This document shows, piece after piece, positions 1 to 6,760 of a stretch of DNA of 64,000 nucleotides. Each line of letters opens with the position of its first letter. The stretch's first letter is position 1. A program made the position numbers and the translations under genes. The notes beneath the pieces are model-generated. The model was not told the origin of the DNA, made no database searches, and was given only the letters and a program-made list of their open reading frames with translations. Source of the stretch: Fonticula alba ATCC 38817 (taxonomy: Eukaryota; Protista; Nucleariida); NCBI GenBank assembly GCA_000388065.2, contig KB932205.1. One strand, given 5' to 3'.

Positions 1-2056
1 AGGACCATGCGCGATATTCCTCCAACCGGATGGGCCTGAAAAACAGGCGATCAACCATTTTCTGCTTGACCATCGAGGCCGGGAGGGGGGGGGGGGGGAT
101 GTTTGGATCTCGAGGAACGTGTTGCCAGTGGTACTCGAGGGTCAGAACCCAGACCGAGGGGGGGCCGCAGGTCGGGGCGAAGCTCAGCGAGGAATCGGAC
201 GACCGTGCCTGTCGGGGCTTGGCGCCAAGAGCTTTCAGGTCTACAGTTTGGGAGACAGCGTCCGTCCTGCTAACATGTGCACAGGGGGGCCCTTGGGCCG
301 TGGCCGCGGCTCGCCCCGCCCCCCGAGCAGGCGGCTGTCGTGCGTATTGGGGGTCCGACCAAAAGTCGACCCGCTGCGAAGCGCACTGGGCGAAGGTGCG
401 GAGGATGCCCCTGGCGCTTCGGTGGCCCTTCACGGGGCGGAGCAGCCACCGCCCTGGCCCATCGGAGCGCCGGGAACCAGACGCAGGCCCGCGTCCTCAG
501 ACCTTTCGTCCCCCCTCCCCCCCCCTTGTGGTGCGGGGACACAGCTTGGCTCCCTTTCGGTCTGCCCTCCCGCCGCGCCCCCTCGCCCCCCACGGCGTGC
601 GGGCTCCGCGGGCCGGTACACGGGGCGGGGGCATAGCCGGGTCATTTCACAGAGTCCAGAGCCAGCCAAGTCGATTCACGTGCCGGTGCCGCCCGCCCGC
701 TCCCAAGAACAAGCGGCCCATCATCTGCCAACACATCTCAGCTCAGGCCCCGGGGCGTTTCTTGCGGCGAGCCACTGTGCGCTCTGCTTTCCGCGGTATC
801 CGGGCCTGGCCGAGTGGATTGGCACGACTGAGGCGGAGCCAGGTTGAGGGCGGGGGGGGGGGGACCGAATTAATACGCCCCCCTCCATCCCTGACAGAAG
901 GTCGTCGTCTGCGCAAGACAAGCTCGTTGCCTCCGAGCAGGGGTGGCTGGGCAACGGCATGTCGTGCGGAATGTGCGTCCCTTCCTCGGTCCCGAGATTC
1001 TTGTGTGTGTGTGTGGGGGGGGGGCACGGCACCTGCGCACACGTTGGGGTGCCCCCTGTCGCCGCCCTTCCGCCACGCGCGCCGGCCCCGAGCAGGGAGA
1101 GGGGTCCTGCATGGAAGGCCCGAGAGAGAGGGGCGGGAGGGGCGCACCGATCGGCAGGGCTCCTCCGCCTAATGGCGCATGTCTCGCGCCCGATTGGGTG
1201 TGCGAAGGTCGGGGTTCTCGCGGTCCCGGCACCCGCCGAGATACGGGCCAGCAAATGGTCCCACGCAGGCCCCCCCCCCCCCGCTCTGCCCCGCCCCACC
1301 TGTAGAGGACCACAGGGACGGGGGGGGGGGACGGGGCTAACGAGAGGCGGGGAACTGGCTATGGAAGTCCCCGGTTGCAGGCTGAAAATAGCCCCAGGGA
1401 GAGACATAGGCACGGCAGGGGGGGGGGGGGGGGGCGGGGGCACGCTCACACGAGGGCCCCGCCAGTCGGCACCCCAGAAGCAAGGCTCCCGCGGCGGTCT
1501 GGCGCGCTCCAGAGAGTGCCCGACCGGCGCCTTTTTCCCACACATCCCCCCGTTTGTCCGCCCCAGGGAAGCTGGCCCCCTCGGCCCTTCGGTTCCTGGG
1601 GCACCGGGGCCCCTCCCGTTCAAGCATGGCAATCTGGCCCCGCCCGGGGGGGGGGGGGGGGGGGGGTGTCGACACTCTTGCCTCAACGGCCGCTCCCCCA
1701 GAGCCGAACACCCCATCCCACCCCACCCCGCCACTCTTCACCTCCTCCCACCTCCTCCCACCCCTGTCCCTTTGACGCTCTCTTCTCGGCCCCGCTGCCT
1801 GCCGGGTCTGATTGTCCTCCCCCCCCCCTCCCCTCCCTCCCCTAGGGGTGCCGTCAGCCCCCTGAGCGTGCCGCGTCCTCTCGCGCCGCTCCCGCTTTTT
1901 CTGGGTGTGCCTCCCCCTGTCTTTCTCTCTCTCTCTCCCTCTCTCTCCCTCTTTGCCCCCTGATCCCCTTCCCGGGAGCCATGCGCGCTGACCTCCTCCC
2001 CCTCCCTGCCCCCTTCGGCCCTTCTCCCTGCTCCCCATCTCGGCCCCAGTCCCAGG

Positions 2057-4026
2057 ATGGGTTTCTTCCGCGAGTCGCCTGCCCAGCAAATTGAGTCCTC
2101 CTCCAGCTGGTCACTGGATTTGACCGATGCCGACATCTTCGGCGCCAGCCCGGATGCCGGCGGGGAAACCGGCCCCCAAAGTGTCAACCTCTCCGACGAG
2201 CCTGCCTCCTCGACGACCGGCCCCGGGCGCCGGTCACGGGCCTCCCCCGGGGGCGAGCTCTTCCTCGGCAGCATGCCGATCGGTGATCTGCGCGACCGGA
2301 TCCGCAGCACCGGTGTCCTGGAGGCCCTCCGGCAAAAGGGCTACTGGGATTTGACCCTCGAAACCGACCTCAGTGATCCGTTTGTCCACTCGTTCTTCAT
2401 CTTTGCCAACGCCTCGTCCGGTCGCCGGGGCCCTTGCGACGCTCCGGGCCCGAGCGCCAGCGCCGATGCCAAGCCGCCGGGCACCACGACCGGCGGGGCT
2501 CCCGAGCGCCTGCTCCTGGTGCAAGTATGCTTCCGCGACATCAAGGACCCTGGGCAGCTGAAATATGCCCTTCATGTGCAGCCAACTCCCAGCCAGCTTC
2601 TGGCGCGGCGCGGACTCAGTCGCAGTCCCAGCGCCGCGAGCGTTGTCGACAACAGCACCGCCGGCGGGCTGGCGGCCGATGGCTCCAGCTCCGAGCCCCT
2701 CTCGACCAGCCAAACCCCCTCCCCCGTCGGCTCTCGATCGGCGTCGCGGTCCGACTCTGGGGCCCTGTCTGTCGGGGCCAATGGAAATGGCCCGGCCGCC
2801 GCCTCCTCCTCTTCCCTCAGCCCGGGGCAGGAGTACTTCGCGTCCTTCATCCTGCCCTTGGCTTCACAGCGCCTTCGTTTGCTTGGACTGGACTGGATGT
2901 TGCTCCAATCGCCCAATGAGAGCTTCTCCCCGACGCGGCCGGCGCTCCCCGGCCAAACACACCCCGGGCTTGGGATCCTCCGCCACATGGGGGATGTCAT
3001 TGGATGGATTGCCTCCGAGCGTCTCCGGTGCGATGCGCTGGTCAATGCGCCGGCCCACTTCCACAATGCCTATATCTACTCGCGCTTTGGCTATGCCTTC
3101 GCCGATCCCGAGGTCCAGGCGGCCTTTAATGCCGTTGCTCGGGATTTGGACCGAGACCAGGAGGCCGCGGCGATTGTGGCTCGGCAAACCGCCGGGCGGG
3201 ATGGCAACACGGCCACGGCCCCGATGACGGGTACCCCCTCCGGGACTCCATCCGAGTCTCCGAGCCCCCCTGCTCGACAGCACACCTACTCGGCGGTGGC
3301 TGCGTCTGGGCGTCGTGGGTCCGGTGTCCTGTCGAGCCGTGTGGGCTTGGCCCTGGTGGCGAATGCCGTCCTGCAGGGCCGTCTACGCCTGCGGTTGCCA
3401 CAGATGCGCGACATTTGCGGATGTCCCGATGGCTGCCCGGCCGCCATCGGGCCTGAGCAAGATCCCCCCGAAGACCCGGTGGTCATCTGGCGCCCCGAGG
3501 AACAGCTCTTCCCCCTGAGCCCGCGTTTCCGGACATACCTCACCAGCCGGCGGTACACCGAGCTCCGGGATGCCTTTGCTCGCCAGGCCCGGGCCTTCCG
3601 CTGGCCCGGGGCCCGGTCCCCCCCTCCGGCCCCGGCCAGTCTTTCGCGCACGGTCCTTGGATGGTTCACCGGTGAGCATGCGCTCGAGCCGGCGCCGGGT
3701 CTGTTTTACATTGACTGGGATGCCTCGCTGGCCGATACCGCCCAGCTGGAGGCCGCCCTGAGCGTGGTGGATGCCACTCGCCTGTATCAGGCTCGCTTGG
3801 AGCAGCTCCTCCTGGACCGGCCATGTCGAGTGGTTGCCCCGGCCGGGGCGGCTGGCACTTCGGCCCCCATCACCGGCGTCGGGATCGACTCGCCGGCCGC
3901 CTCGCCGCCCTGTCCCAATATCGACGCCTCGTCGGCCAGCGCCCACCCCAGCCCGAGCCCCAGCGGCAATGTCGCCACCGGCACCGAGGCAGCAAATGCC
4001 GCGGCCACGGGGCCCTCTGCCTCGAT

Positions 4027-4065
<39 letters not shown>

Positions 4066-4243
4066 TCGAACCGAGTGCGGCACCGCCAGCCGAGCCAGCG
4101 CCAGCACGAGTGCCTCTCCCTCTTCAGATTCCCCTCTTTCCGTCGTGGCGGCCGCCAATGGTGGTGGTCCGGGGGGGACACAGCACAGCACGTATCCCCG
4201 GATGGGGCTTCTCTCGAATTTCCACTACCCGAGCGCCTCGTAG
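2057..4243 (+). CDS. Intronless 728-aa protein: conserved core resembling an uncharacterised bacterial domain with probable GNAT fold, interrupted by S/P/A/G-rich insertions
   Basis: Long ATG-to-TAG ORF with coding-like codon usage. Globular blocks: LEALRQKGYWDLTLETDLSDPF, LGLDWMLLQSPNESFSPTRPALPGQTHPGLG, DALVNAPAHFHNAYIYSRFGYAFADP, VVIWRPEEQLFPL. Family assignment is from memory. Confidence 0.75.
4028..4063 (+). repeat. (GGC)n trinucleotide repeat encoding poly-Gly in the 2057-4243 ORF
   Basis: ggcggcggc... run directly visible. Confidence 0.9.
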
Positions 4244-6760
4244 ACAAAGTGTCCTTCTCCTCCTTCTCCTCCTCTTTCGTGCATTTGTACGTGTGCACGC
4301 GCGTATAGACGTACATCATACCTACCCCCCCCCCCCCGCTCCTCCTCTCTCTTTCGCTCCTTTCAACACATGTGTATGTGCGCTATTATTCGGGAGGGAT
4401 GGTCTCTCGGGGGCCGGATGCAGGCGGGCGGGGGGAGCCGGTTCCCGGGCGAGATCTCCCGACTCCATGTGACGGACGAGTACACCCACACGTGCTCACA
4501 CGCGGAGCCAAACAAGGCCCTCTCGATCCGACGAGTCGTGCTCCTTGGATGGCGTGTGATCACATGAACACACCATGGTCCATGCAGTTAGGGTCGCAGA
4601 GGCCCGCCTGGTACCCCAGGGCGACATCGTGACCCGAGAACATGCGCGTGAGTATAGAATGCTATGGAGGCTTTCGCCTGTTCCAAGGGCAGGGCCCAGA
4701 TCCGTCCGGCGAGGCGCCGGGGGCACTTTCGGAGGAATCTCCACACAATACAATCTCTTCTTGTTCCCGCGATCCCGTTTGTCCATCGGGCTCTTCCATA
4801 TATGACTCATGTAACAGCCTGGAGGGGGGGGGGTGGCGGCTATGCGGAGAGCGCGGCATCGGCTGGGTCCACACGGGGCCGGGCCCGAGGGATGCCCCGA
4901 CCACGCCCTGGGGCCGGGTCCTTAACCGACCGATGACACCCGGAGACGACGTCCCAGCGAAGAGGGCAACCACCGGCGGCCTGCTCCTGTGCGGCCGGAA
5001 GGCCGAGGCGGGGCGCAGGGGCACAGAACACTGGCAGCAAACGCGCCCCCCCCCCCCCCCCCCGCCTCTTCTGGGGCCTTGTGCATTGATGGTGGTCGGC
5101 CAGCCTGCCGGGGAATGTCCACCGCCGGGGGGCGCAGCCGATCACATTCGCGCGGTGGGCAACTGACGCGGCAGCCCATAAGTCAATAAGGTATTTTTAT
5201 TTAGTATGATAAGCATGTGTGGGCACCCTTCTGTCCCCTGCCCTCGCCCGACCTTGGATCGTGTCCGCAGCCCCGGTCTCTGCGCTTGGCCCTTTGCCTT
5301 TTCCGGCGGGGAGGCCCGCCCGCCACGGGCCCACGCGGCGGGGGCGGCGTCTCCGGGACCGGGGCTAGGGGCCGCCGGGAAGCGGGGAGCAGGGCCCCCC
5401 TCCCCCCGCGGGGGCAGGAGCTGGGGGAAAGGCCAACAGAGGGTGAGAGAGACACCGAGAGAGCGAGAGGGAGACCGAGAGAGAGAGAGAGACGAGGAGC
5501 TCAACGTCCACTGGCGCCATTTCCTCCTCGCCCTATCGGTCTGGCCTTCCCCCGGGCCTCAGGGGTACCTCCCCTGGGGGGACGCTCGAGGTGCTGGTTC
5601 CCCTCGCCCCTCAGTCCTGGCCCCACCGGCTAGCCGGGGGTCCAGAGTGGGGACGGGTGCTCCCGGCTGGCCGGCCGCGCCCGCGCGTCTGCAGTTTTAT
5701 GGTGTGTACATGCATGTATGCATGCACGCATGTGTGTGTGTGTGTGTGNNNNNNNNNNNNNNNNNNNNNNNNNNNNNNNNNNNNNNNNNNNNNNNNNNNN
5801 NNNNNNNNNNNNNNNNNNNNNNNNNNNNGCCGGAACCGGTGGCCGAAGAAGTGCGCCCTCAGGCGGGCAACCTGCAGGGGGGGAGGGCGTGGCAAGGGGG
5901 GAGGGGGGGGGGGGGGCCGGGTGTGGCCAGGCGGCCGGGTGACGAGGGGTCGCCCTCAAAAAAAAATCGGTCCGGGCGGGGCCGACGAAAGGCCATCAGG
6001 CCATTCTAGTGGGGATTGTTTTTTTCTGCCAATCGCAGAATGATCATCACATTCCAGATTGAGATGCCCATTCCCGGGAAGGCACGCTCAGACCGCTGCT
6101 TTCCCCCCCCCCCCGCCCGCACATCCGGGCGCGTGAGGAGAAACCCGCGAAAAGTGCAAGGGGCGGACTCCGATACACATCGCGGCGAAGGGCTTCTGTC
6201 GCTGGGCCCTCTGTGTGTGCCCCCCCCCCCACCCCCCACCCCTTGTCCGTCCCGGTCGCACCCCCCTGGCCTCCCGGAGGCCGGGCTGAGATCTGCCCGT
6301 GCCATGCCCGTTTTGATTGGGGCCGGGGGTCGGCCAGGCGCGAGGCCAGGCAAGGCCCGCGGTCAGGCAGGGACTGACCACCGGAGGCCCTTCCCACACG
6401 AATATCGGCTCCCTCCCCCGGCCCCGGCCTCGGGCTGCCGGATGCGGTGGCCGTCAACTGGGCTTCCGTCGGCGGGGACCGGCCCCTGCCACCTTGGCAT
6501 TGAAGGCCCCACTCCCCCCTCCTCCCTCCCTCGCCAAGAGCCAGTCCCGCGCAGAGGCCTAAACTTGCGCGCGTGCGCGCGCGCCAAGCGAAGGACGCGG
6601 GCAGGGGGGACACGCCGCGCCGGTTCTCGCGTGGGCCTGGCCCTGGTGCTCGGGGCCATTGCCCCAGTCCCGTGTGTGATGGGCGTGGCTGGCTGCGAGG
6701 CTGCACGCCTCCTGCTGCTGCTGCGCATGCTTCTCCCCAGGGGCACGGCCGGCCCTCCGC

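Follow-up and report, generated by a model that had tools for sequence, protein, structure and literature searches.

A spliced and expressed gene in the nuclear genome of Fonticula alba

We examined an open reading frame (ORF) of 728 codons at positions 2057–4243, on the plus strand, of a 64,000-nucleotide stretch of the Fonticula alba genome (hereafter the window, to which all positions refer). An earlier note, made from the sequence alone, had described it as an intron-free gene encoding a bacterial-type, probably GNAT-fold protein and a candidate for horizontal transfer. The ORF is real, it is the longest within the first 8 kb of the window, and an identical product of 728 amino acids (aa) is called on the 2.3-Mb scaffold KB932205.1 of NCBI assembly GCA_000388065.2, an assembly that a preprint assigns to F. 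alba. The GC fraction is 0.68 at the ORF and 0.65–0.70 in its flanks (0.54–0.75 across the window), and the excess of GC at third codon positions (0.78, versus 0.67 and 0.62 at first and second positions) extends over the whole ORF.

Expression was assessed with contigs from two small libraries dating from 2012, whose type was guessed as RNA; a splice junction and sharp coverage edges support this assignment. These contigs cover 2049–4019 and 4073–4322 collinearly, and the flanks at 1000–1754 and 4473–5500 are uncovered. One contig (X2 record 4) joins 1842–1903 (its letters 1–62) directly to 2049 onward, and another (X1 record 2) carries 33 unmatched letters upstream of 2049. A G at both 1904 and 2049 leaves a one-base ambiguity at this junction, and a shift by one G yields canonical GT..AG ends; the 1903/2049 junction therefore implies an intron in the 5' untranslated region (UTR) (Table 1). 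Reading the spliced RNA from the sequence, an in-frame TAG (1843–1845) precedes the ATG at 2057, with no ATG between them. The ORF thus belongs to a real nuclear gene of F. alba that is both transcribed and spliced. The description as intron-free holds for the coding region and fails for the gene itself, which has a spliceosomal intron in its 5' UTR, and this combination argues both against contamination and against a silent ORF. Two of the points raised in the earlier note came out in the gene's favour: it is expressed, as the two stretches of RNA coverage and the splice junction attest, and the contig is not a contaminant, given the spliceosomal intron and the 2.3-Mb Fonticula scaffold.

Some further features of the locus and its data were recorded. 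A GGC repeat near 4028–4064 encodes poly-Gly in the C-terminal tail of the protein, and the RNA contigs break exactly there (4019–4073). RNA sequencing runs labelled 'organism B' (X20 and X21) gave just a few low-complexity reads for the gene and are uninformative on its expression. A scaffold gap of 80 N (5749–5828) lies 1.5 kb downstream of the gene, and the window has ten other runs of N. Between 6% and 89% of the gene's 31-mers are present in runs X6 and X10–X17 (soil, sediment and sludge metagenomes, and DNA runs labelled with a different organism, 'organism B'), and this sharing of sequence points to the presence of Fonticula, or of something very closely related, in the samples concerned.

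Three conserved blocks separated by predicted disordered inserts

Homology to compact bacterial proteins is confined to three collinear blocks (phmmer; aa ~59–120, ~251–385 and ~466–580). Between and after these lie stretches rich in Ser, Ala, Gly and Pro (aa 121–250, 386–465 and 581–728), which are modelled at a predicted local distance difference test score (pLDDT) below 50. Alignment and model confidence therefore both confirm the conserved blocks and low-complexity inserts that had been recognised from the letters, and the motif positions reported with them (the LGLDWMLL strand starting at 2882 and HNAYIYSRFGY at 3062) are exact. The Fonticula protein can be described as a domain of ~280 residues, interrupted by two inserts and followed by a tail, all three predicted to be disordered; at the start of the first insert, one strand and one short helix are modelled with confidence. 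The tail (aa 581–728) is covered by no homologue, and block 2 (aa 251–385) is the top-scoring stretch in every match.

Conservation is strong at a limited number of positions. Across 118 sequences, P298, Q300, P303 and G304 are invariant, and H336 and A338 (within FHNAYIYSRFGY) as well as W478 and Y500 (both in block 3) are nearly so. The Fonticula protein retains all of the invariant (5/5) and nearly invariant (12/12) residues of the family. Ahead of the domain, at 2096–2150 of the window (aa ~14–32), there is a short acidic N-terminal motif (hydrophobic-x-hydrophobic-D/E ... D-D/E-hydrophobic); it recurs in the closest relative (P0001, below), in Endogone, Closterium, Cantina and others, and a similar L..DE string is found in bacterial members.

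Table 1. Positions of gene, transcript and protein features in the window
Feature	Positions	Strand	Evidence
Exon 1 (5' UTR, minimum extent)	1842–1904	+	RNA contig X2 record 4
Spliceosomal intron, 145 nt, GT..AG, pyrimidine-rich 3' part	1905–2049	+	RNA contigs X2 record 4 and X1 record 2
Coding sequence, 728 aa, intron-free where RNA contigs cover it	2057–4243	+	ORF, RNA contigs, assembly product
Conserved block 1 (aa 59–120), N-terminal helices and first strands	2231–2416	+	phmmer; pLDDT 89–97
Insert 1 (aa 121–250), S/A/G/P-rich, mostly predicted disordered, mostly absent from compact relatives	2417–2806	+	
Conserved block 2 (aa 251–385), fold core: strand, loop, helix, strand, helix	2807–3211	+	pLDDT 92–97
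LPGQTHPGLG loop (aa 297–306), directly before helix	2945–2974	+	alignment and model
FHNAYIYSRFGY (aa 335–346), helix after the next strand, motif-B-like position	3059–3094	+	alignment and model
Insert 2 (aa 386–465), largely low complexity, predicted disordered	3212–3451	+	
Conserved block 3 (aa 466–580), C-terminal strands and helices	3452–3796	+	phmmer; model
Low-complexity C-terminal tail (aa 581–728, 148 aa), including poly-Gly run	3797–4240	+	
3' UTR	4244–4323	+	contigs of both RNA libraries stop at 4322–4324

A large and unnamed protein family

Relatives of the protein were recovered through an exhaustive HMMER search of 1.84 billion representative sequences, which was needed because low-complexity words swamped the candidates of word-indexed searches (these returned zero or a handful of proteins with the full ORF or with alignments). 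The exhaustive search yielded 770 homologues with E ≤ 1e-3, of which 377 reach E ≤ 1e-10 (best E 1.5e-33), far beyond chance, and most of the matches inspected align collinearly over the three blocks. Homologues are mostly bacterial proteins of ~250–350 aa, with 12 of the 150 best matches reaching ~600–650 aa, and they share the signature LPGQxHPGLG followed by FHNA; the pattern that the earlier note had given (WLLLQNP...) matches the family consensus. The ESM Atlas, as an independent source, indicates proteins of Myxococcota as well as a cluster containing HDACs. When species-representative bacterial genomes were scanned with a 12-row alignment, at least 486 of them were found to carry a relative, including Calditrichota, KSB1, deltaproteobacterial lineages, Aminicenantes, Marinimicrobia, Bacteriovoracaceae, Cytophagia and others. 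Members are frequent among environmental bacteria and occur patchily across eukaryotes.

No established family accounts for these proteins. Searches of Pfam, NCBIfam and PDB sequences with the query returned no family (and no GNAT family even at E ≤ 10), Pfam likewise gave no match at E ≤ 0.01 for any of the 117 family members compared with it, and a search of PDB sequences with the family profile gave no relative. The Swiss-Prot structure library contained no family member and PADLOC gave no defence-system match. The view that the family has no characterised member therefore stands as far as Pfam, NCBIfam, PDB-sequence and Swiss-Prot searches reach. The family is large, counting at least 770 sequence clusters and at least 486 bacterial species genomes besides numerous protists and fungi of early-diverging lineages, yet it is without a Pfam or NCBIfam model, a solved structure or a studied member; the GNAT fold itself is well known.

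AlphaFold DB clusters contain further uncharacterised proteins with this domain. Among them, A0A1J4JR14 (380 aa, 'Initiator binding domain-containing protein') aligns to the domain over its residues 99–348, so that one or more eukaryotes may carry the domain as a fusion with a DNA-binding module. Three homologues from Balamuthia mandrillaris (P0066, P0164 and P0165; 296–399 aa) are named 'Protein kinase domain-containing protein' in their source, a name that may be an annotation carry-over because the domain fills residues 54–388 of the 388-aa P0066 and leaves a kinase domain scarcely any space.

Predicted GNAT fold and candidate cofactor loop

Structures were predicted for the Fonticula core (aa 55–585; predicted template modelling score (pTM) 0.73, with pLDDT above 90 in the blocks and below 50 in the inserts) and for a compact bacterial homologue, P0003 (pLDDT 92.4, pTM 0.88). 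Both models show the GNAT order of elements, namely an N-terminal strand with two helices, an antiparallel sheet, and then helix, strand, helix and strand. A structure search of 48,161 PDB chains, independent of Foldseek, matched the P0003 model to NatD (Z 9.0, 8.5 and 8.2), AtaT (7.8) and TacT3 (7.2), and the top 50 matches were essentially all GNAT-type. With Foldseek, the same model matched the GNAT-like domain of ICL2 first (3e-4), followed by KacT, NatD, AtaT, TmcA and FeeM, with a top 50 that was again GNAT-type. The Fonticula core model drew the same kinds of GNAT matches at lower scores, FeeM being its first Foldseek match in the PDB. The predicted models therefore show the GNAT fold that had been suspected from motifs.

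GNATs bind the pyrophosphate of CoA at a Q/R-x-x-G-x-G/A loop that occupies a strand-to-helix junction (motif A). In the Fonticula model, Q300-T-H-P-G304-L-G306 lies directly before a helix, at a spacing one residue longer than that of the classical motif, and the LPGQTHPGLG loop is a candidate equivalent of this pyrophosphate-binding loop. With the loop spacing off by one, we take the fold as shown and the acyl-CoA cofactor site at the loop-helix junction as inferred.

Bacterial relatives are linked to HDAC11-like deacylases and FadD-like ligases

The earlier note described the bacterial family as occurring standalone or C-terminal to HDAC-family proteins, and it proved to be abundant and to take both forms. 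The two of the ~600–650-aa proteins that were scanned, P0007 (from a deltaproteobacterial metagenome-assembled genome (MAG), and named 'histone deacetylase') and P0030, have an N-terminal PF00850 and the family domain at the C-terminus, and P0154 and P0163 carry a precomputed PF00850; the HDAC fusions are found in deltaproteobacteria and Acidobacteriota. Gene neighbourhoods give a similar picture: of the 80 bacterial loci that were retrieved, 16 have a PF00850 (HDAC) gene of ~310 aa immediately upstream in the same orientation. For the adjacent and fused HDACs, the best match is HDAC11 of Leptospira interrogans (9GZ5/9RJD; 3e-54 and 1e-44), compared with ~1e-30 to 1e-36 for HDAC6 and ~1e-20 for HDAC8, such that class I/II enzymes are far poorer matches than HDAC11. 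The combination of GGG[FYL]HH and xGGY, the motif of the catalytic Tyr, was present in all 15 complete adjacent HDACs and in 10 of 13 fused ones (among the ~514–644-aa matches examined), and RPP, the motif that GGG[FY]HH replaces in class IV enzymes, was found in none of the adjacent and fused HDACs checked for it. Judged by best match and motif, the partner deacylases belong to the class IV HDACs (HDAC11-like, cluster 5) and bear the long-chain foot-pocket signature. According to the passages found of PMC11532494, the motif replacements GGGFHH (in HDAC11) and SGGYHH (in VcHdaH) enlarge the foot pocket for long acyl chains, and those of PMC13325672 attribute robust long-chain deacylase activity to clade B HDAC11s; the passages found of these two papers contain no mention of a GNAT-like partner acyltransferase or of an HDAC-GNAT fusion.

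A second association, in another bacterial clade, is with AMP-binding fatty-acyl-CoA ligases. One or two FadD11-like ligase genes are situated directly downstream in six loci (L015, L024, L025, L027, L031 and L064), and in two bacterial MAGs a ligase is fused C-terminal to the domain within a single ORF (L008:5911–8655 and L009:5998–8673; 914 or 891 aa). Both associations amount to Rosetta-stone hints and fall short of proof.

Origin of the eukaryotic copies

Homologues were detected in at least 15 eukaryotes from several supergroups, among them the nucleariid Lithocolla globosa; the ichthyosporeans Sphaerothecum and Amoebidium; another holozoan, Pigoraptor; the fungi Endogone, Acaulospora and Chytridium lagenaria; the amoebozoans Balamuthia, Acytostelium and Phalansterium; the metamonad Anaeramoeba; the streptophyte alga Closterium; and the stramenopile Cantina. 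The best match overall, P0001 (346 aa), is compact and without inserts of the Fonticula type. It is encoded on metagenome contigs of ~18–22 kb with a GC fraction of 0.59 (L001:8001–9041, from a bioreactor sample, and L002:5831–6871), where the accompanying genes are eukaryote-type (a 1374-aa ABC transporter, PDCD2_C and PAP_assoc); no synteny was found between the Fonticula window and the P0001 metagenome contig.

In a carefully built maximum-likelihood tree with 16 rows from eukaryotes (counting the query) and 28 from bacteria, a single branch separates all of the former from all of the latter (bootstrap 98, SH-like approximate likelihood ratio test 91), and the query is closest to P0001 and to Lithocolla, its nearest named relative. 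A larger, quick tree of 118 rows agrees with it. Just outside the eukaryotic group lie P0021 and P0057, which are bacterial by gene context. As the eukaryotic copies form one group, the Fonticula gene was inherited from eukaryotic ancestors and not taken up recently from bacteria. Weighing against simple inheritance, branching among the eukaryotes follows the species tree only loosely, in that the nucleariid copies sit with holozoans and not with fungi. The eukaryotic group looks nested within bacterial diversity when the 118-row tree is rooted at its midpoint, the root itself not being established; such nesting agrees with a transfer into some early eukaryote long ago, and an ancient transfer between bacterial and early eukaryotic lineages is possible.

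The earlier note had instead favoured lateral acquisition by this lineage, possibly from prey bacteria, followed by the addition of eukaryote-style disordered inserts. A recent transfer of this kind would agree with the bacterial majority of the family, the intron-free coding region and the nested position of the eukaryotic group in the midpoint-rooted tree. However, the best matches of the protein are widespread eukaryotic proteins, the very observation that the note had named as speaking against transfer, and the nearest named relative is itself a nucleariid. The 16 eukaryotic rows, drawn from several supergroups, fall on one side of the 98/91 branch, the GC fraction of the gene equals that of its flanks, a spliceosomal intron interrupts its 5' UTR, and the scaffold that carries it is 2.3 Mb long. 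We consider recent acquisition from bacteria extremely improbable. The case offers a caution for genome interpretation, as a 'bacterial-looking, intron-free' gene of a protist turns out to be a member of an old eukaryotic group.

Proposed function and alternatives

We lean towards the view that these proteins are acyl-CoA-dependent N-acyltransferases and constitute a new family with the GNAT fold, one that probably works in opposition to HDAC11-type deacylases and possibly with medium or long acyl chains. The domain would bind acyl-CoA at the loop-helix junction and pass the acyl group to an amine, which might be a protein lysine, an N-terminus or a small amine, and the family would thereby 'write' an N-acyl mark, possibly a fatty-acyl one, for HDAC11-type enzymes to erase. 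The role of writer appears the most likely one because of the linkage, by fusion and operon, to HDAC11-type deacylases and FadD-like ligases in bacteria. More speculatively, and as an extension that we ourselves find doubtful, the family might be the long-sought enzymatic writer of long-chain N-acylation specifically (on lysine or as an N-fatty-acyl amine signal) with an HDAC11-type 'eraser', a pair that would have arisen in bacteria, entered eukaryotes early and persisted in protists such as Fonticula. In bacteria the two would be joined by fusion or co-transcription, with a further coupling to fatty-acyl-CoA ligases in one clade.

What is new here appears to be an unmodelled and unstudied family, together with a link to HDAC11 that appears undescribed. 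To our knowledge, the enzymes responsible for attaching long fatty acyl chains to lysines and the substrates on which HDAC11-like enzymes act physiologically are both poorly known, which is why the HDAC11 linkage matters; a dedicated partner acyltransferase, if true, would make both questions directly testable.

Several observations count against an acyltransferase role coupled to HDAC11. The putative cofactor loop is one residue longer than Q/RxxGxG/A, no GNAT sequence profile matches the family, and the structural Z scores of 6–9 are just moderately above the background described for the tool. Some GNAT-fold domains are non-catalytic, and one of these, the C-terminal domain of ICL2, is among the best Foldseek matches. 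Each of the two associations, with HDACs and with ligases, is limited to certain bacterial clades, neither gene type is present in the neighbourhoods of P0021 and P0057 (the bacterial relatives nearest the eukaryotes), and nothing ties the Fonticula protein itself to an HDAC11-type enzyme. Activity and ligand binding are putative for every member of the family.

One alternative is a non-catalytic GNAT-like module, serving as an acyl-CoA sensor or scaffold that regulates an HDAC11-type deacylase or acyl-CoA ligase partner, much as the GNAT-like C-terminal domain of Mycobacterium tuberculosis ICL2 regulates with acetyl-CoA. That ICL2 domain ranks first in the Foldseek list of the compact model (3e-4), ornithine decarboxylase antizyme, which has a similar fold and is non-enzymatic, is also among the structural matches, fusion to enzymes is typical of regulatory domains, and no classical catalytic Glu or Tyr can be assigned. 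We nevertheless hold such a module to be rather unlikely, given that the loop and the His, Tyr and Trp residues are very strongly conserved from bacteria to eukaryotes, as is more typical of an active site, and that the majority of members, every eukaryotic one seen among them, stand alone and so offer no partner domain for regulation. Were the domain catalytic, its substrate could be a small molecule, as in FeeM-like synthesis of N-acyl amino acids or polyamines, with the HDAC11-type partner hydrolysing the amide. FeeM heads the PDB matches that Foldseek gives for the query model and reappears in further lists, the donor would come from the adjacent fatty-acyl-CoA ligases, and non-peptidic targets are proposed for clade A HDAC11s in the passages found of PMC13325672. 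Yet the best Z scores are to acetyltransferases directed at protein N-termini and tRNA (NatD, AtaT and TacT), and no biosynthetic cluster is apparent around the bacterial genes, leaving a small-molecule synthase distinctly unlikely.

The remaining alternative places the family with AcuA/Pat-type short-chain acetyltransferases, which silence AMP-forming acyl-CoA ligases at their catalytic lysine, the HDAC then acting like AcuC of Bacillus. A GNAT-like protein in the company of a Zn-dependent deacylase and an AMP-binding ligase does recall acuA-acuC-acsA, and AcsA is described in the passages found of PMC11532494 as being regulated at a lysine conserved in the ANL family. However, the partner HDACs are class IV/cluster 5 enzymes with the long-chain foot-pocket motif and not AcuC-like class I enzymes, the ligases are FadD-like and not acetyl-CoA synthetases, and the two partners occur together in none of the 80 loci (0/80). 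We regard this short-chain switch as quite improbable, and return to an N-acyltransferase paired with an HDAC11-type deacylase as the reading that we would favour.

Comparison with known systems

The AcuA-AcuC-AcsA acetylation switch of Bacillus subtilis has a similar logic, in which the GNAT-type writer AcuA, the Zn-dependent eraser AcuC and the AMP-forming ligase AcsA are linked in the genome. The present family differs in that its putative eraser is of another HDAC class, its ligase is FadD-like, and it has no sequence relation to the GNAT Pfam families of AcuA type. Leptospira HDAC11 (9RJD) and the cluster-5 structure 9GKV, which we take probably to be Vibrio cholerae HdaH, are comparable to the partner HDACs and not to the GNAT-like family itself; the fused and adjacent HDACs have them as best matches and possess the GGG[FY]HH and xGGY motifs in common with them.

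For the domain, the best structural match of both models is NatD/Naa40, the histone H4/H2A N-terminal acetyltransferase (PDB 4ua3, 4u9w and 9syr), with Z 9.0 over 149/193 residues for P0003 and Z 7.3 for the Fonticula core. The two share a common GNAT core and an extra N-terminal segment, but identity is 8–12%, with no detectable sequence similarity, and unlike NatD the family has an insertion of ~15 residues before the putative cofactor loop and extra C-terminal helices. NatD is also eukaryotic, whereas the family is mainly bacterial. The GNAT toxins AtaT, TacT and KacT rank high as well (Z 6.2–7.8); in contrast to them, members of the family are ~100 residues larger, have no antitoxin-like small neighbour gene and match no PADLOC or toxin family. 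The C-terminal GNAT-like domain of M. tuberculosis ICL2 (PDB 6ee1 and 6edz), the top Foldseek match of the P0003 model at 3e-4, is regulatory and non-catalytic. It resembles the HDAC and ligase fusions of the family in being a GNAT-like module appended to another enzyme, but the family differs from it in being mostly standalone and in the strong conservation of its putative active-site loop.

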